Part shown: one piece after another, positions 2,223-64,000 of the stretch
Layout of the letters: every line of letters begins with the position of its first letter
Position numbering within the stretch: position 1 is the first letter of the stretch
Position numbers and translations under genes: made by a program
DNA from: Macrostomum lignano
Lineage: Eukaryota
NCBI GenBank assembly: GCA_002269645.1
Contig: NIVC01000201.1
Span: 372,001 to 436,000 of the forward strand
DNA length: 64,000 bases
Direction of reading: 5' to 3'
The notes under the pieces: model-generated
Database searches by the model: none
The model's input: the letters and a program-made list of their open reading frames with translations, nothing else
Told to the model about the DNA's origin: nothing

Positions 2223-3036
2223 GGCGATTTTTGAGGAGAGTTAGGAGCAACTCTTGAGGATAAAGGGGCGGTTCATGAGGAGGATTAGGAACAGATATTT
2301 ATAAGCGATACTTCTAAGGACTTCGATGTCATAGCACAACTTAGTACAACCAGACCTGTTATTCAACTTGAATGTCTTGGCCTCCGTTGCCGGGACAGGA
2401 GCAGCTTGCTCTTCACTTTCAGTAGCCTGAAGGTAAGAAGCATTGCATGCATGTAGCAGGGCTCTGCTTTCTATACAATTAGAGGCAGGAGTTCAGAAGC
2501 CAAACACGAGAAAGCTTTTATTCAGCCGTCAGTTTCCGCAGGCACTATATTTTATATTTGCATGAGAGTCCTAAACAGCTCTGACGCACCCTTCCTGCTC
2601 AGACCGGCCAAGTCTTTCCTGATCATCTTAATCGCATATAATTTCTCTCCTAAAAATTAGCGAGATTTTTTAGCTTTCAGCACTAAATTTACAGTTACAC
2701 CATCGTCTTTGCTGCCCCAAGTAGTGCAGTAAGCAACTGAAAACAAAGTTTAAAAGACACAGAAAAAATGTATGATTTTTGAAAAAAAACAATCGACGTA
2801 TATTTATTTTATACTGGAAACTAGGAAGAAGCACAAATTGCACAAATTAAAATGCGATATAATTATAAATCTTAAATAGGATTAACATTATGCACCCAGC
2901 GGTAAGCCGGTTTTAAAATACAGATTCAAGGGAGAAAATGCAGTGCAGAGCCCTACGAAAATAGCGCCGATATGTTGTGAAAAATGGTTTGGGTAAATAA
3001 ATACGGGATTGAATAAAATACTCTATTTGATGCAAT

Positions 3037-3891
3037 CTAGTCTTCGGATTAGGGAATAGAATGAATTGCTAATCTAGCCTACAGATTAGGGAATAGAACG
3101 GATTGCTAATCTAGTCTACAGATTAGGTAATAGAATGGATTGCTAATCTAGCCTACAGATTAGGGAATAGAACGGATTGCTAATCTAGTCTTCGGATTAG
3201 GGAATAGAATGGATTGCTAATCTAGCCTACAGATTAGGGAATAGAACGGATTGCTAATCTAGTCTTCGGATTAGGGAATAGAACGGATTGCTAATCTAGT
3301 CTACAGATTAGGGAATAGAATGGATTGCTAATCTAGCCTACAGATTAGGGAATAGAACGGATTGCTAATCTAGTCTACAGATTAGGTAATAGAATGGATT
3401 GCTAATCTAGTCTACAGATTAGGGAATAGAATGGATTGCTAATCTAGTCTACAGATTAGGTAATAGAATGGATTGCTAATCTAGTCTACAGATTAGGGAA
3501 TAGAATGGATTGCTAATCTAGTCTACAGATTAGGGAATAGAATGGATTGCTAATCTAGTCTACAGATTAGGGAATAGAATGGATTGCTAATCTAGTCTAC
3601 AGATTAGGTAATAGAATGGATTGCTAATCTAGTCCACAGATTAGGTAATAGAATGGATTGCTAATCTAGTCCACAGATTAGGGAATAGAATGGATTGCTA
3701 ATCTAGTCTACAGATTAGGGAATAGAATGGATTGCTAATCTAGTCTACAGATTAGGGAATAGAATGGATTGCTAATCTAGTCTACAGATTAGGTAATAGA
3801 ATGAATTGCTAATCTAGTCTACAGATTAGGTAATAGAATGGATTGCTAATCTAGTCTACAGATTAGGGAATAGAATGGATTGCTAATCTAG
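3037..3891. repeat. Minisatellite, 37-bp unit, about 23 copies, with internal 7-bp inverted repeat CTAATCT/AGATTAG
   Basis: AGATTAGG recurs at 37-nt spacing (e.g. 3083, 3120). Confidence 0.95.
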
Positions 3892-6607: not shown

Positions 6608-7102
6608 CGCTGGAGCAATAATATTAATTTTACTATATTATTTTTGTAACCAAAAGTGAAAGATTTCATGCTACCGAGGGTCGAACCCTATATCAAAATA
6701 CCCTGAAATTTCCCTAAACATTGAGTCTAAAATACTCGAACAGAAAATTTCGTAAATAACCAGAGACCTTTACAAATCCTGCTATCATTGGGAAGCTTGT
6801 ATTAAGGAGCGGGGATCGTGCTGTGAAACTAACTTGCGGTTAAAAATATTTATTATGTATTTGCGCTGAATGTAATATTACAAATTCCTTAAGGCCTTTT
6901 TCACACTGCTCTATGTTCATAGGTTTCATGCGCATTGTGAGAAACATCGTGTACAATTGTGACTTTTGTGCAACGTTGCGTTGCTTAAATCCCATCTAGT
7001 GTGCAGGGTGACCACAGTGCAGAGTATTGAAGGAGGTCTTTAGGCTTTAGACAATGACTTAGATTGTCATAAAAAACTAAAGGCGTACTGCTTTTATTTT
7101 GC

Positions 7103-7797
7103 AATTGTATGTATATTCACTCATTTCAGCTGACAATCAAACCAATTGTATGAATACTCACTCATTTCAGTTGCCAATCAAACCAATTGTATGTATATTC
7201 ACTCATTTCAGTTGCCAATCAAACCAATTGTATGTATATTCACTCATTTCAGTTGCCAATCAAACCAATTGTATGTATATTCACTCATTTCAGTTGCCAA
7301 TCAAACCAATTGTATGTATATTCACTCATTTCAGTTGCCAATCAAACCAATTGATGTATATTCACTCATTTCAGTTGCCAATCAAACCAATTGATGTATA
7401 TTCACTCATTTCAGTTGCCAATCAAACCAATTGTATGTATATTCACTCATTTCAGTTGCCAATCAAACCAATTGATGTATATTCACTCATTTCAGTTGCC
7501 AATCAAACCAATTTTATGTATATTCACCCATTTCAGTTGCCAATCAAACCAATTTTATGTATATTCACTCATTTCAGTGACAATCAAACCAATTTATGTA
7601 TATTCACCCATTTCAGTTGCCAATCAAACCAATTGTATGTATATTCACCCATTTCAGTTGCCAATCAAACCAATTTTATGTATATTCACTCATTTCAGTT
7701 GCCAATCAAACCAATTGTATGTATATTCACCCATTTCAGTTGCCAATCAAACCAATTTTATGTATATTCACTCATTTCAGTTGCCAATCAAACCAAT
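7103..7797. repeat. Minisatellite, 41-bp unit TTGTATGTATATTCACTCATTTCAGTTGCCAATCAAACCAA, about 17 copies
   Basis: Direct inspection; ORFs 7099-7884 etc. are by-products. Confidence 0.95.
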
Positions 7798-21905: not shown

Positions 21906-22239
21906 GTTGCATGTGCATACATGTACTAATTTATTGTTGTGTCCGGTTACGCATGCACCGATGAGCAATCTCTGGATCTCGGGGCCGCGGGCATTGCACT
22001 TAACAACCATTTCCCCACAGCATTTGTTTAACCCTCCCACATTTGGCTGTCTGCCCCGGCTCGTGTGGCATGTCCAAAAATGTCCTGATTGGCTAGTACA
22101 TGTACCCCTCGTCCCAGGCGGGGGGGGAGGGGGACATGTCCCCCCAGTATAAAAGCTTTGGGGGGACATGCCAATGCTTTGTCCCCCACCCCACCAATTG
22201 TGACTCGTTGTGGTAATCAATAATTTTTCTTCAGGGCGT

Positions 22240-22600
22240 CAAAATGAGAGCCTACGGCGCTAAATGAGTGCCTGCGGCTCTAAAATGAGTGCCTGTGGCG
22301 CTAAAATGAGTGCCTGTGGCGCTAAAATGAGTGCCTGTGGCGCTAAAATGAGTGCCTGCGGCTCTAAAATGAGTGCCTGTGGCGCTAAAATGAGTGCCTG
22401 TGGCGCTAAAATGAGTGCCTGTGGCGCTAATGAGTGCCTGCGGCTCTAAAATGAGTGCCTGTGGCGCTAAAATGAGTGCCTGCGGCGCCAAAAGATCAGA
22501 GTTCCTGCGGCGCCAAAATGAGTGCCTGCGGCGCCAAAATGAGTGCCTGCGGCGCTAATGAGTGCCTGTGGCGCTAAAAAGAAGTGCCTGCGGTGCCAAA
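22240..22600. repeat. Minisatellite, 21-bp unit AAAATGAGTGCCTGTGGCGCT, about 16 copies
   Basis: Direct inspection. Confidence 0.95.
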
Positions 22601-23164: not shown

Positions 23165-23250
23165 GTGCCTGCGAGACGATATATCGTCCGGATGGAGACT
23201 GTTGAGTCAACAGCTTTGCCCCATCAGGAGTCATAGGTCCGAGTCGCCTG
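23165..23250 (-). promoter_or_regulatory. Type II (form 2) SECIS element of SELENON
   Basis: Minus strand: AUGA(23234-23231) C UCCUGAUGGGG C AAA G CUGUUG-ACU-CAACAG U CUCCAUCCGGA C GA U. Helix II has 10 of 11 positions paired, apical AAA, 6-bp helix III, tandem GA core, imperfect helix I (GCGA..GAC/GUC.UCGC). Confidence 0.88.
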
Positions 23251-23756
23251 CTAATTGAGGACTAAACCGGTGCATGGGCACGGTGCCCCAGTGATCGACT
23301 TGCAGCAGAACTTGCTCAGACAGACCGCAATCTGAGTAAGCTTTGCTGTACCATCGAGCACTTGATCGGAGCGAAGATAACTACCACAGGTGTACAGAGT
23401 CGCGAATTTGAGATTAATTCTCTTGCTTTAAGCCACAAAATTGGTTTACACACAGCAGATATATAATAAAGTCTTTAATAGAAAATAGTGGCAGAGTAAA
23501 AGTAAAACTTAATTTAAAGTACAAATGTACTTGTAGAAAAAAAATTGTCCTGCCAAAATATGCTCATTCTGTCGGAAAAAAAAATGAACGGATTTTTAAA
23601 TTAATAAAATTCACACCACTGCAGCTTTGGACCGGTCTTTTGGTTTAGAAAATGTAAATTAGGAATGCATTAAATAACTGATATTGGTAGGGAGCTCCTT
23701 GGGATTGGATTGGATGATAGCTCGTGCATGCAAGAGACTTCTAGTAATTTGGCAGG

Positions 23757-24605
23757 GACTGCTTAGCTGATAAGGAAGGAGTGCACAATGGGGTGGCTGG
23801 GGCTGCTTAGCTGATAAGGAAGGAGTGCACAATGGGGTGGCTGGGCCTGCTTAGCTGATAAGGAAGGAGTGAACAATGGGGTGGCTGGGCCTGCTTAGCT
23901 GATAAGGAAGGAGTGCACAATGGGGTGGCTGGGCCTGCTTAGCTGATAAGGAAGGAGTGCACAATGGGGTGGCTGGGGCTGCTTGGGTTGGCTGATAAGG
24001 AGGGAGTGCACAATGGGGTGGCTGGGGCTGCTTGGGTTGGCTGATAAGGAAGGAGTGCACAATGTGGTGGCTGGGGCTGCTTGGGTTGGCTGATAAGGAA
24101 GGAGTGCACAATGGGGTGGCTGGGGCTGCTTGGGTTGGCTGATAAGGAAGGAGTGCACAATGGGGTGGCTGGGGCTGCTTAGCTGATAAGGAAGGAGTGC
24201 ACAATGGGGTGGCTGGGGCTGCTTGGGTTGGCTGATAAGGAGGGAGTGCACAATGTGGTGGCTGGGGCTGCTTGGGTTGGCTGATAAGGAAGGAGTGCAC
24301 AATGGGGTGGCAGGGGCTGCTTAGCTGATAAGGAAGGAGTGCACAATGGGGTGGCTGGGGCTGCTTGGGTTGGCTGATAAGGAGGGAGTGCACAATGGGG
24401 TGGCTGGGGCTGCTTGGGTTGGCTGATAAGGAGGGAGTGCACAATGTGGTGGCTGGGGCTGCTTGGGTTGGCTGATAAGGAAGGAGTGCACAATGGGGTG
24501 GCAGGGGCTGCTTAGCTGATAAGGAAGGAGTGCACAATGGAGTGGCTGGGGCTGCTTGGGTTGGCTGATAAGGAAGGAGTGCACAATGGGGTGGCTGGGG
24601 CTGCA
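23757..24605. repeat. Minisatellite, 44-50-bp unit, about 18 copies, between the SELENON stop and its SECIS
   Basis: Direct inspection (GCTGATAAGGAAGGAGTGCACAATGGGGTGGCTGGG core). Confidence 0.95.
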
Positions 24606-24874
24606 CAACTGAGTTGAGTAAAATGATCAGTTAAATTCTAAGAATTCTATATCCAAACTAAGCGCACGGAAGTTACAAAGTTTGGACACTTTCTTGGACG
24701 TATCTTTAATTGTAAAAAATGAGTTTCATAGTCATATACCAGAGTAGCGTAGGGTGCAAGTAGGCACAAAAGCCATTTTGGCTGCAAATAGTTCGGTAAA
24801 AAGTGTCATCGGATAGAATGAGAGCATCGGAAAGAATAAAAATGAAGATAGATAAGCAGCTGTCGAGTTTCCTT

Positions 24875-27800
24875 CTATTTTTTGTCCGCAATGGCTAAGC
24901 CGTCTTCCAGGAACTTCAAGTAGGCCTCGCCGTGAGCCTCCTCGACTCTGCAAGCAGTTTTGGATTGAAGACTCTCTTAGTTAACACTCTCAGACCCTTC
25001 AGCAGGGCATCAGCTACCTGATCTCAGATCCTTCAGCAGTCTACCTGATCTCAGATCCTCCAGCAGGCTACCTGATCTCAGATCCTCCAGCAGGCTACCT
25101 GATCTCAGATCCTCCAGCAGGCTACCTGATCTCAGATCCTCCAGCAGGCTACCTGATCTCAGATCCTCCAGCAGGCTACCTGATCGCAGATCCTTCAGCA
25201 GGCTACCTGATCTCAGATCCTCCAGCAGGCTACCTGATCTCAGATCCTCCAGCAGGCTACCTGATCGCAGATCCTTCAGCAGGCTACCTGATCTCAGATC
25301 CTCCAGCAGGCTACCTGATCTCAGTCTTTAGCAGGCCACCAGCTCTGATCTCAGATCTTTTGATCCTAATTACTTCAGGGAAAATGACACAGCTACTCAC
25401 GAGAAGTTGCTGGTGATTTTCTTATCCGCAGAATCCAGCATAGCGTTGGCGTAGAGGCTGTGCACCACAGTCCCGTTGCCGTCGCTGATGAGGGATGTCA
25501 CGGGGAAACTGTAGGCCTCCAAAGTCCTGGTCGACACCTGCGCTAGCCAAGGATCTTGATCCTTCTCCTGCTGCCACTTCTGCAGGTCGATAATCAGCAC
25601 CCAGGTGCTCACAAATCGACGCTCCAGCAGCGACTGGACGGCCGGGTTCTCCAGCGCGGTCTTGCGGAGAACCCGGCCGGAGCCTCAGCAGCTCTGGTCG
25701 TCCAGGGAGCCCCAGAGCACCACCGAGTGCACCAGCCGGGGGCTTCCCTTGCCGTCGTCCGCGTCGGACTTGGCGGCGAGCTTCGCCCGGCGAAAGGCCT
25801 CCGGGAAGGGTAGGTAGGGCACCCGCTTGAACGGGTACAGCTCCACTTCCAGCAGGCTGAAGGCGCGGTCGAAACTCATCGGCTGTTCTGAGGGCTTCGC
25901 CACTGCCGCCAGCTGATGGTCATATCGACCTGCGGGATGGCCACAATCTCCTTACCGCTCCGATCCTCTCCTTCCGCTCCCGGTCTTTTCTTCTTCCGCC
26001 CCCGATCCTCTCTCGTTCCGCCCCCGGTCTTTTCTTCTTCCGCCCCCGATCTTCTCTCCTTCCGGCCCCGATCCTCTCTTCTTCCGCCCCGATCCTCTCT
26101 CCTTCCGCCCCGGTCTTTTCTTCTTCCGCCCCCGATCCTCTCTCCTTCCGCCTCCGATCTTCTCTCCTTCCGCCCCCGATCTTCTCTCCTTCCGCCTCCG
26201 ATCTTCTCTCCTTCTGCCCTCATCCTCTCCTTCCGCCCCCGATCCTTATTTCATCCGTCCCGGATCCTCTCTCCTTCCGCCCCCTATCTATCCTTCTTCC
26301 GCCCCCAATCCTCAATCGTTCCGCCCCGCATCTTTTATGTATCCGCTTCCATGCTCTCCTCTCCCTCGCTGTTCCCCTAGCATTTCCCCCCAGCATACCA
26401 ACAGCCTCGGGCTTCAGCTTGCACGCATTCTCCGTGCACAGTCGCATACTACTCGAGTAGCCAATATCGACTTCGACAAGCAGTTCATCTGGCGCGCCGG
26501 ACATCCCGGCCTGCACCCACTCCATGTCGACGTTGAGATTCTTGTCGGCGGGCAGGTCCATGTCCAGCAGCAGCAGGCGGGAGAAATCGGCCGAGAACAC
26601 GGCGTGCCCGAACCAGAAGCTGGGCGTGAACCAGAACGGATAGGCTGGGGGGCGGGCCAGCTGGAACTCGCCGTGCAGTCGGAAGGCCACCTCGACGTGG
26701 TCGGGCCCAACCGAGCGCACCAAAGCGACGCTGCTGTGCGGCGGGTGACGCGTGGAGGCGAAGGCACCAGGGTGGAAGGCGGATAGCAGGGCGCTGATGG
26801 CGCGGGCTCCGGGCGAGTCCGAGTAGCTGGGCGGCAGGTAGCGGTTCATCGAGTGCGCCGTCTCGTAGTCGAACTCGTCGCGAATCCCGACGCCCGACTG
26901 ACTGTCGTCTAGCGGCCGGCGGGTGACGTAATAGGGCCGCCCGATGGACTGGTTGGCTGGCGGGCGGAGCCCCGCGATGATCAGCGACTCGGGCAGGTCC
27001 AGGGGACAGCGATGGGGCCGAGTCCAGTTGAACAGGGCGTTCAGGTAGTGCAGGTTGGTGCCCCTCTCCTGGGTTGGCGGCGAGACGGGGAAGGGTTGAT
27101 ACAGGTGAGATATACTCGTAATTAATGCAACCGGTGCAATGGGGTGGTAGGGTGGCGGCATCTTAATTGCAGAGTGGGTGGCGGCATCTTAATTGCAGAG
27201 TGGGTGGCGGCATCTTAATTGCAGAGTGGGGTGGCGGCATCTTAATTGCAGAGTGGGGTGGCGGCATCTTAATTGCAGAGTGGGGTGGCGGCATCTTAAT
27301 TGCAGAGTGGGTGGCGGCATCTTAATTGCAGAGTGGGGTGGCGGCATCTTAATTGCAGAGTGGGGTGGCGGCATCTTAATTGCAGAGTGGGGTGGCGGCA
27401 TCTTAATTGCAGAGTGGGGTGGCGGCATCTTAATTGCAGAGTGGGTGGCGGCATCTTAATTGCAGAGTGGGGTGGCGGCATCTTAATTGCAGAGTGGGGT
27501 GGCGGCATCTTAATTGCAGAGTGGGTGGCGGCATCTTAATTGCAGAGTGGGTGGCGGCATCTTAATTGCAGAGTGGGTGGCGGCATCTTAATTGCAGAGT
27601 GGGGTGGCGGCATCTTAATTGCAGAGTGGGGTGGCGGCATCTTAATTGCAGAGTGGGTGGCGGCATCTTAATTGCAGAGTGGGTGGCGGCATCTTAATTG
27701 CAGAGTGGGTGGCGGCATCTTAATTGCAGAGTGGGTGGCGGCATCTTAATTGCAGAGTGGGTGGCGGCATCTTAATTGCAGAGTGGGTGGCGGGTCAGAG

Positions 27801-29786
27801 AGTTAAATAAACCAGTTTGCCGGTACAAACCGCGGACAAATCCTTAGTGATTGTGTCCAGGTGAAGCGGATCGAATTCGCAGTACAGGCGAGTCATTCGC
27901 TCTTCTTTGTTGGCCCCGCCGCCTTCGAGCGCGCGATAGCTGGTCGCCATCGGCGGGTTGAAATCCTGCAAAGTACAACGGGTAAAGGTGCATGCATATT
28001 TATTAAGGCTTTGCCAGGTGTTAGTAAAGGCCAGCTAATTATCCCACCTTGACAGGTCCAAGCCGGTCCATCAGCTTCCCAAACTCAGCGGGATCCAGGT
28101 AGTCATCGTCTTCGGAGTCCACGGTGCGGAACAGGCGGAAGAAGGACTCGCCGATGTAGCCAATCACCGCTTCCGAGCTCATCGGCATGCTGACCGGCTT
28201 GCGGCCGGCCAGATCGTCCGAGGGCACATCCAGGCCTTTGCTGGAATGTTGGGATTGAGTGAGCTGCGCAACTCCACTTAACACCTGCACTATATTGGAG
28301 ATGCCGAAGACCTGATTAGACAAGCTAAGAGTTGATTGCACACCTTAAATACCTGTTTGAAACCCTCGAAAAACCTATGAAACACCCACAGAACCAAATC
28401 GGACACCCATAAACCCTGATTGTACACCCATAAACCCCGATTGTAGACCCATAAACCCCGATTGTACACCCATAAAACCCGATAGGACACCCATAAACCC
28501 AATTGGACACCCATAAAACCCGACTGGACACCCATAAAACCCGACTGGACACCCATAAACCCTATCGGACACCCATAAAACCCGACTGGACACCCATAAA
28601 CCCTATCGGACACCCATAAAACCCGACTGGACACCCATAAACCCTATCGGACACCCATAAAACCCGACTGGACACCCATAAACCCTATCGGACACCCATA
28701 AAACCCGATTGGACACTCATAAACCAGCCTGGACACCCATAAACCCCGATTGGAAACCCATAAAACCCGACTGGACACCCATAAAACCCGACTGGACACC
28801 CATAAACCCGATCGGACACCCATAAAACCCGACTGGACACCCATAAACCCGATCGGACACCCATAAAACCCGATTGGACACCCATAAAACCCGACTGGAC
28901 ACCCATAAAACCAGATTGGACACCCATAAAACCAGATTGGACACCCATAAAACCCGATTGGACACCCATAAACCCCGATTGGACACCCATAAACCCAATT
29001 GGACACCCATAAAACCCGACTGGACACCCATAAACCCGATTGGACACCCATAAACCAGACTGGACACCTATAAATCCCGATTGGACACCAATAAAACCCG
29101 ACTGGACACCCATAAAACCCCGATTGGACACCCATAAACCCCGACTGGACACCCATAAAACCCCGATAGGACACCCATAAAACCCGACTGGACACCCATA
29201 AAACCCGACTGGACACCCATAAAACCAGATTGGACACCCATAAAACCCGACTGGACACCCATAAAACCCGACTGGACACCCATAAACCCGATCGGACACC
29301 CATAAACCCTATCGGACACCCATAAAACCCGATAGGACACCCATAAAACCAGACTGGACACCCATAAAACCCGATTGGATACCCATAAAACCAGACTGGA
29401 CACCCATAAAACCCGACTGGACACCCATAAAACCCGACTGGACACCCATAAAACCCGACTGGACACTCTGCTCAAGCAAATAAACTTTGACGATTTAGCT
29501 TGGCACTGGTTAGTACGAACCGGTTAAGCACCATCTCTAGATTCGGGTCGCCAACACCCAGCCGTTCCGCGATCCCAAATCCCAGCACCAGTCGTTTGAA
29601 ATTAACGTAGGCCTTGGCCTGCAGCGCCGGTCGCTGGTAGAGAGACGCCAACGCCAGCGCAGTGAAGAGAACGGCCACAGCCGAGGTGATGTACAGAGTT
29701 CGGGGCTTGAATCTGAACACCAGGTGCCGACGGTTAAGCGACACCGACGGCAACGACAGAGGAGGCCCGGCGTCAACCGACGCCAT
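24875..29786 (-). CDS. SELENON: Selenoprotein N (6 exons, about 641 aa, Sec at about residue 523)
   Basis: Exons 29786-29532, 28311-28048, 27965-27831, 27068-26399, 25929-25401, 24947-24875, all GT-AG with consistent phases (exon-1 donor is the weakest). N-terminal TM, EF-hand [87 protein letters not shown] all match SelN as I recall it. Confidence 0.95.
25000..25350. repeat. Intronic minisatellite (SELENON intron 5), 27-bp unit, about 12 copies
   Basis: GCAGGCTACCTGATCTCAGATCCTCCA repeats. Confidence 0.95.
25639..25679 (-). promoter_or_regulatory. Sec redefinition element (SRE)-like hairpin downstream of the Sec UGA
   Basis: Minus strand: UGA(25687-25685) GGCUC CGGCCGGGUUCUCC-[13-nt loop]-GGAGAACCCGGCCG; perfect 14-bp stem starting 5 nt after the UGA. 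Confidence 0.8.
25960..26335. repeat. Intronic strand-asymmetric degenerate minisatellite (about 21 bp; SELENON intron 4)
   Basis: TCCGCCCCCGATCCTCTCTCCT-like repeats; purine-rich on the coding strand. Confidence 0.9.
27140..27792. repeat. Intronic minisatellite (SELENON intron 3), 26/27-bp unit, about 24 copies
   Basis: GGTGGCGGCATCTTAATTGCAGAGTG(G) repeats. Confidence 0.95.
28375..29466. repeat. Intronic minisatellite (SELENON intron 1), 20-22-bp unit, about 50 copies
   Basis: GGACACCCATAAAACCCGACT repeats. Confidence 0.95.
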
Positions 29787-30348
29787 TGTCTTCTTTGATA
29801 CAAATTAGTTGACGCAATGAGTGGGCTTGTGCGTGTTTAGTGCACTTCACTGAAACGGGAAACATGTTTATTGAAAATATTTTAAATAGAGAAGTAAACA
29901 CAGAACAAAGAACTAAGCGAAAATTCCAAGAGCCAGTAGGAAAATATCAATAGGATTATTAGCTAGTTTTTTTATTAAAAAGCCACAAGCACGTCAAACT
30001 ACGGTAGGCTTAGGTTTCGCGGTCGCAACTTGTACTTTCGTGTTTGTGCACCATCAGACGAATAGTCTCATTATTGCTTCACAGTCCAACAGAGCTATGT
30101 ACAGAGTTCTAAAAATAGATCCTGGACCAAGGGTAGCTAAAACGCTTAACTTTCTATTAATGTACGCAGGCAGGGAGAGAGGAAAACGATAGGCGGAAAA
30201 CCAAATGTACATTGGCTAGAATAACTCTTACCCCGCCCTACACCCCTCAGACCTGTACATTCTTTCTAACAATAAAATTAGAGTGGGCCAGCGAGAGGGG
30301 CCATAAAAATTGGAAAAGTATTCAGGCGTAAAATCAAGCCAGCCAGCC

Positions 30349-31665
30349 ATGCAGAACCCACCCAACCCCAGCATACGCATCGACGGACCAGCAGCGGGCG
30401 AAGACGAGAACAACAACGAGATTGTCTCGGCATTCGCCGCCGCGGCCTCTCCAGTCTGGCGGCAGGAGGCGCGCAGCCTCTGTCGCGAGTACATCGGCCA
30501 TCGACTGTACCGCGCCGGCTGCATGACCCCCAGCCTGCTGTACAGCCTGCCGCCAAATGCTGGCTCCCAGACTAGCCAGCGCCTGCGGCGTCTCTGCCAC
30601 AGACTGGAGCTGCTGCACCCAGCTGTGTTCGCTCAACCGCTGACTGGCCAGCTGGGCCTCACCCTGCTGCCTACCAACGGCGTCACCGACGCTGTCGCTA
30701 TGGCAACGATTCGCCGAGCGTATCGCAAGTTTGCCAGACGCCTGTTAAGCATGCCGCCAGACTGTGACTGGGACTGGGGCAGGCCGGTGGCGCTGTTCTG
30801 CATGGCTGGAGCATTCGCTGTGGATTATGCGAGTGCAAGGATGCAGCTCAGGCTGCTGGGAGGCCGCTCCTGCGAGCAGGCTATTGAATCTCTGGCCGAG
30901 TGCCTGTCCGAGTGCCTGGCAGAGTGCGCAGTAGAGTGCTCGGAGCTGTTTGACTGGCTGACCGAACGAGGCGGTTGGGTCTTTGTGAGAACTGGATGAC
31001 GTTTGTGTTGGAACTCATTGTTCGTGTGGAGTGGTCCATGTAGCATCAGGGAGGGTAGGAAGCAATGGACCACTGAAGCATCAGGGAGGGTAGCAAGCAA
31101 TGGACCACTGTAGCATCAGGGAGGGTAGCAAACAATGGACCACTGAAGCATCAGAAAGGGTAGAAAGCAATGGACCACTGAAGCATCAGGGAGGGTAGCA
31201 AGCAATGGACCACTGAAGCATCAGGGAGGGTAGCAAGCAATGGTTCACTAAAGCATCAGGGAGGGTAGCAAGCAATGGACCACTGAATCATCAGGGAGGG
31301 TAGCAAGCAATGGGCCACTGAAGCATCAGGGAGGGTAGAAAGCAATGGACCACTGAATCATCAGGGAGGGTAGCAAGCAATGGGCCACTGAAGCATCAGG
31401 GAGGGTAGAAAGCAATGGACCACTGAAGCATCAGGCAGGGTAGCAAGCAATGGGCCACTGAAGCATCAGGGAGGGTAGCAAGCAGTGACCCACAAAATGA
31501 CTGCCGACAAAATACCTAACGAGTTAACCTCGCATCTTTCAGCCCGACCCGGAGACCTCAGCGTTTGCAAACAGAAGCGGCCAACACGATGGCGCAACTG
31601 TTTGGCAGAAAATACTCGCCCGTTGCGTGCAATACTACTATCAGCTGCTTGGGCGCTGTGCGTGA
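30349..31665 (+). CDS. BOK: Bcl-2 family protein, BOK-like (2 exons)
   Basis: Exon 1 30349-30984: BH4-like CREYIGHRLYRAG, BH3-like LRRLCHRLELLHP, BH1 WDWGRPVALFCMAGAFAVD, BH2 WLTERGGW. Donor TTT|GTGAGA, branch-like CTAAC and acceptor CTTTCAG|31543, stop 31663-31665. The second exon assignment is less sure than the first. Confidence 0.75.
31035..31485. repeat. Intronic minisatellite (BOK), 35-bp unit, about 13 copies
   Basis: AGCATCAGGGAGGGTAGCAAGCAATGGACCACTGA repeats. Confidence 0.95.
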
Positions 31666-32174
31666 TATTGTGCCAAAAAACATGCTGAATGTCGAACTGC
31701 TTTTCCTGACTACTTTTGTGAATTTTAAACCTTCATGCACTAAATAAATTAACGAAAGCATAACTTTCTGTTCCTCGTAAACAAAAAAGCCGATGGTGCA
31801 ATTTATTAATAATTGGAATAGGCAATGGGAGTGAAGTGTAAGTGCAACAAAGTTGAGAAATGTGTGAAACAAAATAACATAGTGGGAATGAGCAATGCAA
31901 GGGATATGCATGACGACAATATTAATTGGAGATAAATATTTTTACACGTGTCTGTACACCTAACATGCGGTACTACGAGCAAAAACCGGATTCGCAACTA
32001 AAACTTCATGATTCGGTGGCAGCCAGATCTTTGTTTTCATCAAAAATACAATTCAGTTCAGACAATTTCGACTAGATACAGGCCGAAATGCCAGTAATGG
32101 TTGGTTATAAGCATTTTTGACTTAAGCTTTTCAAGTTTGGTTTCATTCAGCTTTCTAAACCTAATGAATATAAT

Positions 32175-32570
32175 GTACACAAGCCTATCCGCAGCCCTCT
32201 GATCCCAATGTACACACGCCTATCCGCAGCCCTCTAACCCCAATGTACACACGCCTATCCACAGCCCTCTAACCCCAATGTACACACGCCTATCTGCAGC
32301 CTTCTAACCCCAATGTACACACGCCTATCCGCAGATCTCTAACCCCAATGTACACACGCCTATCCGCAGATCTCTAACCCCAATGTACACACGCCTATCC
32401 GCAGATCTCTAGCCCCAATGTACACAGGTCTATCCACAGCCCTCTAACCCCAATGTACACACGCCTATCTGCAGCCTTCTAACCCCAATGTACACACGCC
32501 TATCCGCAGATCTCTAACCCCAATGTACACACGCCTATCCGCAGATCTCTAACCCCAATGTACACACGCA
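32175..32570. repeat. Minisatellite, 36-bp unit, about 11 copies
   Basis: CCCCAATGTACACACGCCTATCCGCAGATCTCTAAC repeats. Confidence 0.95.
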
Positions 32571-32721
32571 AGAGACAAAAAAATAGTCGAAGCACTATCC
32601 AATATAAATCTGCTGTAGATCAACTGGATCCTAAAAATTACAAACTGAATTGATTAAATAGTTATCATGATATGCCATCCCGAATAATAATATTTAATCA
32701 GCTCGAATTTCAGCTCCCGAG

Positions 32722-33852
32722 TCAATCGTCTTCATCCGAGTCCTCAAGCCCGTCCAGCTCGCCCTCCGGCATCCCCAGCTCGCGCCAGAGTCCGGCAATG
32801 ACGTTGGCCGCCAGCTCGCGCCTCTCGGCGCTGTGCACCGGCAGCTGGTCCGCCTGCGCCTTGGCGCGCATCACCCGAGTGAACAGCGACTCCAGCCGGC
32901 GCCCGTCCTCGTCGTCGTCGTAGACCCGATCGAGCAGCGCTTCGTCAACGATTGCCGCCGAGGCCGAGTTGGGTGCCGATTCGCTGATTGCGGAGGCCAC
33001 AGCAGCTGCTGCAGCTTCCGGTTCAACAATTGCATCTTCATCTTTGTCGAGATTTGCCTCAGCCGAAGCTTCCGCATCAGCTTCCGGCTCGCCACTGTTG
33101 GCTGTGTCGGCGGCGGCGGCGGCTTGCTCAGCCAGCAGCTGTTCACGAATCCGGCGCATGGACTCGGACTCCTGGCGCTCGCTGTCCGGCCGCATGACCA
33201 GATTCGGCCACGGGTGCGAGTGCAGCGCCTGCCGCATGCGCTCCAGGCCGCAGCGGTCCTCGTCTTCATCTTCCCCGTCGGAGTCTCCAGCCTCCCCGAC
33301 CCCGTTGCTCCTCTCGTCGGCCAGTTCGATCAGTTCGAACCCGTTGCTGACGCACCAGCCGACTGCTTCGTCCCGAGTCACCAAGCCGGCACTGTTGTTG
33401 CCATGGCTACGGTTGCTGGACCGATCGGAGGTCACCAGGAAGCGCACCTCCGGCTCCAGGTGCTCCAGGTAGGCCAGCCACGATTTGGCTACGTCAAAGC
33501 AGCGCCGCTGGCCGGGGCAAAAGTACAAACCGACAGCTTCGACAGCGTCGGCCAACTGCTGGCTGCCGAGCAGCGGCTCCGGCACCTGCAGAATCTCCAC
33601 CTCTGCCTCGTAGTACTTGTTGCTGAGGCGCCACGAGTACGCGCTGCACTGCCCAGCTGGCAGCCCGGTGTCGCAGCTCGGCGCTTCCAGAGCCGGCGGC
33701 GGCCCCGCCGGACTGCCGAGAAGGCCGCCAACGAGGCCCGGGTAGAGCGAGGCGGCCGGGTCGCTGCGGCCGGACTGGCAGCAGGCGGACAGCAGCAACA
33801 CCGGCCTGGCCGATGCGGCGGCGGGGCTGTCGGCGTCGGCGGCGTGCGACTG
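32722..33852 (-). CDS. AAGAB: Alpha- and gamma-adaptin-binding protein p34; no ATG in this exon, begins at a splice acceptor
   Basis: YSWRLSNKYYEAEV, EAVGWCVSNGFELIEL, GLERMRQALHSHPWPNLVMR and C-terminal LESLF...RRELAANV match AAGAB as I recall it. The frame begins at TTTGCAG|CAG with an in-frame stop upstream. Confidence 0.85.
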   Translation of the reverse strand, partial: QSHAADADSPAAASARPVLLLSACCQSGRSDPAASLYPGLVGGLLGSPAGPPPALEAPSCDTGLPAGQCSAYSWRLSNKYYEAEVEILQVPEPLLGSQQLADAVEAVGLYFCPGQRRCFDVAKSWLAYLEHLEPEVRFLVTSDRSSNRSHGNNSAGLVTRDEAVGWCVSNGFELIELADERSNGVGEAGDSDGEDEDEDRCGLERMRQALHSHPWPNLVMRPDSERQESESMRRIREQLLAEQAAAAADTANSGEPEADAEASAEANLDKDEDAIVEPEAAAAAVASAISESAPNSASAAIVDEALLDRVYDDDEDGRRLESLFTRVMRAKAQADQLPVHSAERRELAANVIAGLWRELGMPEGELDGLEDSDEDD

Positions 33853-34064
33853 CTGCAAAGTTTGCAGGAGTTCAAAATGCTCGAATCAACTTTCAACGCT
33901 TGAAGAAATTGATTTATTGCGTCCGTGTGACTGTCTATAATCGATCCGTATCAATTCCCAATCTCAGATCTCCGATTCCTTTGGCACTTGGTTTTGAAAA
34001 TATTAATCACAGATACTAAATCCCCTGGTACTTAATTCACAATACCCGAAAACCTGATCATTAA

Positions 34065-34900
34065 TCTCCCAATATTTTGAGACCCCTAATCTCCCATGCT
34101 CAGATCCCCAATCTCTCATTCTCAGATCTAAAATCTCCCAGTCTCAGATCCGAAATCACCTATTCTCAAATCTCTAATCAACATTTTCAGATTCTTAATC
34201 TCACAGTCTCAGATCTCTAATCCTCCATTCTCAGATCCCCAATCTCCCATTCTTAGATCCCCAATCTCACAGTCTCAGATCCCAATCTCCCATTCTCAGA
34301 CCCGAAATCTCTCATTGTCAGATCCCCATTCTCACAGTCACAGATCTCTAATCCTCCATTCTCAGATCCGAAATCTCACAGTCTCAGATCCCCAATCTCA
34401 CAGTCTCAGATCCCAATCTCCCATTCTCAGACCCGAAATCTCTCATTGTCAGATCCCCATTCTCACAGTCTCAGATCTCTAATCCTCCATTTTCAGATCC
34501 GAAATCTCCCATTCTCAGATCCCCAATCTCACAGTCTCAGATCCCTAATCTCCCATTCTCAAATCCCAAATCTCCCATTCTCAGATCCGAAATCTCTCAT
34601 TCTCAGATCCGAAATCTCCCATTCTCAAATCCCAAATCTCCCATTCTCAGATCCGAAATCTCTCATTCTCAGATCCGAAATCTCTCATTCTCAGATCCGA
34701 AATCTCCCATTTTTAAATCCCAAATCTCCCATTCTCAAATCCCAAATCTCCCATTCTCAGATCCGAAATCTCTCATTCTCAGATCCGAAATCTCCCATTT
34801 TCAAATCCCAAATCTCCCATTCTCAAATCCCAAATCTCCCATTCTCAGATCCGAAATCTCCCATTCTCAGATCCCTAATCTCCCATTCTCAGATCCTTGC
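34065..34900. repeat. Degenerate minisatellite, about 21-bp unit (AAATCTCCCATTCTCAGATCC)
   Basis: Direct inspection. Confidence 0.92.

Positions 34901-37033: not shown

Positions 37034-64000
<26,967 letters not shown>

Follow-up and report, generated by a model that had tools for sequence, protein, structure and literature searches.

Is the in-frame TGA at 25687-25685 on the minus strand of Macrostomum lignano contig NIVC01000201.1 a true stop codon, or does it encode selenocysteine (Sec)? We addressed this question in a 64-kb stretch of the contig (assembly GCA_002269645.1), hereafter called the window, from a flatworm of the Macrostomorpha. A preliminary description of the window had proposed that a Sec-type selenoprotein N gene with the motif SCUG was split here by the open reading frame (ORF) finder. 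Our analysis bears this out through homology and the position of the TGA in ...DDQSC-U-GSGR: the gene is very probably the M. lignano orthologue of selenoprotein N (SelN, SELENON, SEPN1), with UGA codon 503 read as Sec. This reading is supported by the structure of the gene, its membership in the SelN family, the conservation of the UGA, the purifying selection acting after it and a covarying hairpin.

A selenoprotein N gene and its public annotation

To build the gene model, we mapped P0001, a public protein, and the frame downstream of it to the window. The gene occupies 29786-24875 of the minus strand and consists of six coding exons separated by GT-AG introns, one of which is 82 nt long. 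Its coding sequence of 1866 nt forms a single continuous frame of 621 codons, in which the TGA (codon 503) is the sole internal stop, and an in-frame stop precedes the start ATG (29786) by 7 codons. Around the TGA the minus strand reads GAC CAG AGC TGC TGA GGC TCC GGC CGG, which the preliminary description had given correctly to the base. It had also joined the ORFs 25685-25903 and 25397-25612 into one exon. Both are present in the mechanical ORF list, 291 nt apart and in the same frame, and the exon that they form is bounded at 25929 and 25401. The two exons that it had added to that list, one of 45 codons (27965-27831) and the last one (24947-24875), have exact coordinates and are backed by other gene models and by the mRNA of a relative. 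In the list itself, the former is found inside a 58-aa ORF and the latter is below the listing size; the last exon is 100% identical to that of the second M. lignano copy of the gene.

The family membership follows from several searches. The named matches of exons 4-6 are primate selenoprotein N sequences (E ~1e-56, 90% coverage). The full protein aligns with SelN of Rhinopithecus from the EF-hand to the C-terminus with 34% identity over 538 residues (E 4e-81), and the aligned landmarks include EFQL..PP.FPFWF, LNVDMEW, EVDIGY, YPFK..YLPF, LWG.LDDQSC and the C-terminal FL..GL. The SelN-like sequence that had been noticed on both sides of the UGA is confirmed: the 118 residues past the TGA match SelN on their own (E 4e-22), and the agreement far exceeds what chance would give. 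In an alignment of flatworm, invertebrate and primate SelN, about 100 columns are invariant.

When the family alignment was searched against a word-indexed protein collection, only 2 proteins were obtained, and a full HMMER scan of 1.84 billion cluster representatives was used instead. It was found that the family is small, with 137 matches, and that the nearest named relatives are SelN proteins of spider, freshwater mussel, octopus, cuttlefish and whelk. Most of the alignments stop at query residue 502, where the target itself runs out, just before the Sec; in public data, most members of the SelN family are systematically cut off at the Sec codon. The named truncated relatives (among P0020-P0069) carry the labels 'hypothetical protein', 'EF-hand domain-containing' or 'partial'. 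No SelN family was found in Pfam, where exon 5 alone gave only a chance-level match, and a PDB search with the family profile gave no SelN structure.

A membrane anchor and an EF-hand are expected of SelN, and both are found here, the EF-hand with a match under the Pfam cut-off. The predicted anchor is preceded by basic residues, and these fit a type II orientation. For the EF-hand loop, the family profile matches the EF-hands of calbindin and calmodulin in PDB at 1.6e-5.

The public records of this gene are affected by its UGA. The translation of exons 4-6 is 100% identical to M. lignano PAA88127.1, which is named 'hypothetical protein BOX15_Mlig016072g1' in GenBank and 'EF-hand domain-containing protein' in UniProt. 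This GenBank model has 502 aa and ends with ...DDQSC, that is, at the TGA, and the model of the second copy, PAA75298.1, ends with ...DDQSC likewise. In the UniProt models A0A1I8FYM7 and A0A1I8GCW3, 20 codons around the UGA are deleted, which corresponds to a 60-nt pseudo-intron at 25720-25661 on the minus strand (GTGCTC...CGCAAG); one of these two models contains the last exon. The active site is missing from all four public models and none of them is named SelN. The automatic mis-annotation that had been thought likely is thus what we observe, with two models stopping at the TGA and two removing the 60 nt that contain it. The pipelines took the UGA as a stop, and so each public model is truncated or lacks the active site. 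Such truncation of selenoproteins at the UGA is well known (e.g., PMC13134290 and PMC2958745). Our finding corrects four public protein records.

Conservation and probable decoding of the UGA codon

We first consider the second copy of the gene (L004, on contig NIVC01000891.1). It has the same TGA, within an identical context of 71 nt. When the two copies are compared, 14 of the 15 exonic differences are synonymous, and this includes all 11 differences in exon 4. In the 357 coding nucleotides past the TGA there is one difference, also synonymous, while the introns diverge by ~6%.

Transcript evidence was taken from Logan RNA-seq contigs. L002 and L003 (from two runs) come from a close relative, whose protein has 68% amino acid identity to M. 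lignano SelN; L005 and L007 represent a distant invertebrate-like gene, and L008 and L009 are vertebrate-type genes. These six intronless mRNA contigs, representing four other SelN genes from five runs, all retain the UGA within SC-U-GSGR, and the mRNAs of the four genes stay in frame for ~120 codons past it. Their exon junctions agree with the six-exon model of the M. lignano gene.

The ratio of nonsynonymous to synonymous substitution rates (dN/dS), calculated for the window against L002, goes from 0.25 upstream of the UGA to 0.19 downstream, where dS is ~1 overall. Judged from these ratios, the 118 codons past the UGA are under purifying selection at the protein level. This bears directly on an alternative in which the UGA is a true stop, the protein has 502 residues ending with ...DDQSC, and the downstream part is 3' untranslated region (UTR) or a decaying remnant. 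Both NCBI annotations end there, and no selenocysteine insertion sequence (SECIS) is confirmed by a curated model. However, the post-UGA codons are constrained as strongly as the rest, they match the C-terminus of SelN, and their frame continues across a GT-AG intron to a conserved end; moreover, a product that stops at residue 502 would be without the catalytic Sec and the part of the C-terminal domain that follows it. We regard a true stop as very improbable.

The UGA is also accompanied by a hairpin. SEPN1 carries a selenocysteine codon redefinition element (SRE) next to its UGA, which promotes Sec insertion (PMC8704476, PMC12839072). The hairpin in the window has a fold energy of -48.8 kcal/mol (z -4.6), and none of 200 shuffles was as stable. 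All 14 of its pairs are formed in each of five SelN mRNAs (100%), with compensatory changes at 5 of them. The covariation score was not matched by any of 500 column shuffles, and when the partner was slid by one column the pairing fell to at most 59%. In vertebrate SEPN1 the SRE reportedly begins 6 nt after the UGA, and the vertebrate-type contigs L008 and L009 show this 6-nt spacing between UGA and hairpin directly. The conserved arginines R507 and R510 of the M. lignano protein correspond to human R466 and R469, which are SRE residues affected in disease (PMC3541580). On the basis of its sequence, the M. lignano hairpin has the position and form of the SEPN1 SRE. Compensatory changes have kept it from flatworm to vertebrate-type genes, which argues that the element is old and matters functionally.

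Many selenoprotein families have cysteine homologues. This favors another alternative, in which a TGC, giving the cysteine form, appears as TGA through an error in sequencing or assembly, or in which a near-cognate tRNA (Trp, Cys or Arg) inserts its amino acid at the UGA and selenium is not involved. The TGA is, however, found in two separately assembled contigs and the same codon in the six transcript contigs from five other runs, so that the TGC considered in the preliminary description is not what the independent contigs and the relatives' transcripts contain. The downstream hairpin corresponds to the SEPN1 element that is known to promote the insertion of Sec. All flatworms surveyed to date decode Sec: Schmidtea, Schistosoma and Taenia have 7-19 selenoproteins, including SPS2 and thioredoxin reductase (PMC3828610). 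An error or a selenium-free readthrough is accordingly given very little credence. The splicing around the UGA that the preliminary description had likewise considered is hardly credible in the form of the 60-nt intron of A0A1I8FYM7 and A0A1I8GCW3: it has GT and AG at its ends, its removal would preserve the frame and the gene has a short intron elsewhere, but it would remove the most conserved stretch of the family (with many columns invariant from flatworm to primate), the segment is kept and the UGA not skipped in the transcripts of the close relative (two runs) and of three other SelN genes, and it looks like a gene predictor's way round an in-frame stop.

Returning to Sec as the reading of codon 503, we infer from the evidence described above that the ribosome would decode this UGA as Sec. 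Table 1 collects the coordinates of the gene and its elements.

Table 1. Features of the M. lignano SelN gene in the window (positions from the first base of the window)
Feature	Coordinates	Strand	Description
Coding exon 1	29521..29786	-	aa 1-89 (first two bases of codon 89); basic N-terminus and single hydrophobic segment; donor CG|gttcgt
Predicted signal-anchor/transmembrane segment	29640..29696	-	aa 31-49; preceded by R/K-rich residues; sole Kyte-Doolittle peak >2 (2.07)
Coding exon 2	28048..28240	-	aa 89-153; contains EF-hand; acceptor ttccag|C, donor AAG|gtggga
EF-hand loop	28084..28119	-	aa 130-141; aligned with the DTDGDMYISPEE loop of primate SelN
Coding exon 3	27831..27965	-	45 codons, aa 154-198; found in GenBank model P0001 and in the relative's mRNA L002
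Coding exon 4	26399..27068	-	aa 199-422 (first base of codon 422); conserved SelN core EFQL..PP..PFWF..LNVDMEW..EVDIG
Coding exon 5	25401..25929	-	aa 422-598; carries the Sec codon and the SRE-type hairpin; acceptor ccgcag|GTC at 25929, donor CTC|gtgagt at 25401
UGA, probable Sec codon 503	25685..25687	-	motif S-C-U-G, context DDQSC-U-GSGR
SRE-type hairpin	25639..25679	-	stem of 12+2 bp, begins 6 nt past the UGA; arms GGCCGGGUUCUC...GAGAACCCGGCC
Coding exon 6	24875..24947	-	aa 598-621 and TAG at 24877-24875; in UniProt model P0010; aligns with the C-termini of L002 and primate SelN
Candidate SECIS, type II	23184..23234	-	AUGA, 13 nt, unpaired AAA, 7-bp apical mini-helix, C-GA-U

The SECIS candidate and the surrounding locus

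The SECIS was sought downstream of the stop codon with two custom scans that combine pattern matching and folding. Over the 5.9 kb scanned, there was a single strong match (Table 1), with -22.2 kcal/mol compared to -12.1 for the runner-up. Its AUGA_AA_GA pattern is correctly spaced and a U.U / G.A / A.G quartet could form in it; helix II has 10 bp, and helix I, with ~9 bp, reaches ~23248 and 23172. Among 150 dinucleotide shuffles of the 5.2 kb past the stop, one equalled it. The candidate occurs only once in the window, and the second copy carries it unchanged; this identity is not significant alone, because the whole surrounding stretch of ~0.8 kb (23750-22990) is ~97-98% identical between the copies. 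We consider it reasonably probable that 23234-23184 is the SECIS of M. lignano SelN.

Several observations weigh against a Sec-containing SelN at this locus, the weak point being the SECIS at the 3' end. The candidate SECIS is placed 1.64 kb past the TAG, beyond a minisatellite of 0.84 kb, and there is no canonical poly(A) signal within 1.2 kb after it. The only poly(A)-like hexamers close to the end of the gene are ATTAAA at 24710 and 23479, which precede the candidate, and AATAAA at 21935. The candidate is therefore no more than a possible part of the SelN mRNA. Rfam finds no SECIS in the window at the gathering threshold. With the E limit raised to 10, the downstream 10 kb and the slices of 221 nt and 77 nt around the candidate give none either. 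Outside the 3' end, no tRNA-Sec was found within the window, the EF-hand matches Pfam EF-hand_6/7 with an E of only 0.03, under the cut-off, and positions 3 and 6 of its loop are occupied by E and D, respectively. Finally, the function of the M. lignano protein would be carried over wholly from vertebrate work.

The silence of Rfam, in a SECIS search run without a known SECIS as positive control, is a weak test and says little, because Rfam is also silent on four other SelN mRNA contigs. The custom scans of L002, L003 and L005-L009 gave nothing convincing, and the 3'UTRs of these contigs may be incomplete; a BLAST search of the relative's 3'UTR against the window gave no similarity. In the region between the stop codon and the candidate SECIS, the minus strand has CTG|gtatat at 24739, which resembles a splice donor, and tttttttttccgacag|AATGAG at 23569, which resembles an acceptor. 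A 3'UTR intron between these sites is conceivable; it would remove the array of 49-nt units and leave the candidate ~0.47 kb past the stop.

The scanned contig L006, which is unrelated to SelN, contains a near-perfect palindromic hairpin of 24 bp at 2139-2203, with weak matches to several microRNA families on both strands. It is probably an inverted repeat or an assembly artefact that has nothing to do with SelN.

The second copy of the gene is syntenic, with the same Bcl-2-like and adaptin-binding neighbours. Upstream of SelN (30300-33860; 4935-9425 in L004), the Bcl-2-like gene and the adaptin-binding (p34) gene, the latter at 32722-33858 on the minus strand, are found in the same order in both copies. 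The two SelN loci are thus syntenic, and they represent either homeologues or haplotypes that were left uncollapsed.

The locus is rich in tandem repeats. Each long SelN intron and the stretch after the stop are filled with their own unrelated minisatellites, at 28382-29466, 27150-27793, 25947-26334, 24988-25335, 23766-24604 and 22235-22600, with units of 21, 26, 22, 27, 49 and 21 nt, respectively, and 12-52 copies. Array lengths differ between the copies; for example, the array of intron 3 is ~0.64 kb here and ~3 kb in L004 (11478-14550). In the 64 kb there are ~18 distinct minisatellite arrays with periods of 20-56 nt, among them those at 3034-3891, 7102-7797, 34080-34896, 41378-42612, 45131-46353, 55725-56346 and 62197-63102. 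Several minisatellites yield long spurious ORFs, such as 23851-24606, 28644-29303 and 45253-46746. The window also begins with a 390-bp unit repeated 3.0 times at 100% identity (1-1181), and it contains a (TGAT)n run of ~296 copies at 56732-57919.

Two further coding regions were noted. The ORFs 42883-44178 and 59268-60083 on the minus strand contain spectrin repeats (E 6e-32 and 3.5e-6, respectively), which suggests a large spectrin-family gene on that strand, spanning at least 42.9-60 kb. The ORF 1430-1975, also on the minus strand, has an aminoacyl-tRNA editing (YbaK-like) domain (E 9e-15).

Proposed mechanism and comparison with known systems

We propose that UGA 503 would be recoded to Sec through the pathway of SECIS, SBP2, eEFSec and Sec-tRNA. 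A SECIS in the 3'UTR, for which 23234-23184 is the best candidate, would recruit SBP2, eEFSec and the Sec-tRNA, and the SRE-type hairpin next to the UGA may aid the recoding. Vertebrate SelN is located in the membrane of the endoplasmic reticulum (ER), senses luminal Ca2+ by its EF-hand and acts on SERCA as an oxidoreductase with its Cys-Sec pair (PMC12839072). By analogy, the M. lignano product would be a type II protein anchored in the ER membrane, most of it on the luminal side; its luminal EF-hand may sense Ca2+, and its Cys-Sec pair may serve as the oxidoreductase that keeps the SERCA pump active.

The distribution of SelN in invertebrates had been called patchy in the preliminary description, and the literature agrees: SelN was present in 5 of 6 invertebrates (PMC3473315), and a 2013 survey of flatworm selenoproteomes found it absent from Schmidtea, Schistosoma and Taenia and inferred its loss from flatworms (PMC3828610). 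Our literature search gave no paper that links Macrostomum with SelN. The two intact and selected copies in M. lignano contradict a phylum-wide loss, and since M. lignano is a flatworm of the Macrostomorpha, the loss is moved inside the phylum. This refines the picture of how the selenoproteome was reduced on the way to parasitism. We lean slightly towards a fuller account, in which this is the first recognised flatworm SelN, the loss occurred later, in the lineage of planarians and the parasitic classes after Macrostomorpha had branched off, and the SRE is bilaterian-wide. If so, an SRE adjacent to the UGA would be common to protostomes and vertebrates, instead of a feature described in vertebrates only. 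Fly and nematode are not known to have SelN. M. lignano is amenable to RNA interference and transgenesis, and if the account holds, it could allow SelN function and the recoding by SRE and SECIS to be studied genetically in an invertebrate.

When compared to vertebrate SelN (e.g., the primate proteins P0002-P0005), the M. lignano protein shares the architecture from the EF-hand to the C-terminus at 34% identity over 538 aa, the SC-U-GSGR context of the active site and a single N-terminal membrane anchor. Its mRNA shares the hairpin 6 nt past the UGA, with pairing held by compensatory changes. The M. lignano gene has 6 coding exons whereas the human gene has 13 (PMC12839072), and the protein has 621 aa compared to 590. 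It carries an extra acidic insert of 15 residues directly ahead of the active site, while a segment near the C-terminus is shorter. Its EF-hand loop is less canonical, and its SECIS is only a candidate.

Among invertebrates, the best HMMER matches are SelN proteins of the spider Stegodyphus, octopus, cuttlefish, the bivalve Potamilus and the whelk Nucella, with 31-39% identity and E from 1e-36 to 1e-44. Like the M. lignano models, most of them were cut off at the UGA when annotated automatically, and the only names given to several are 'hypothetical' or 'EF-hand domain-containing'; unlike M. lignano, none of the named matches is from a flatworm. M. lignano SelN has less than 40% identity to every 50%-identity cluster except its own, and by this measure it represents a divergent lineage.

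The active site can also be compared with the GCUG motif of thioredoxin reductase, to which a review of SelN likens SCUG (PMC12839072). In both, Gly follows a redox pair of neighbouring Cys and Sec. The families are nevertheless unrelated, and no homology to thioredoxin reductase was detected in any search: in that flavoenzyme the motif contains the penultimate residue pair, whereas in SelN it is internal, 118 residues from the end. The M. lignano gene belongs to a known family and is not a new kind of selenoprotein, and how selenoproteins work is left unchanged by the finding.

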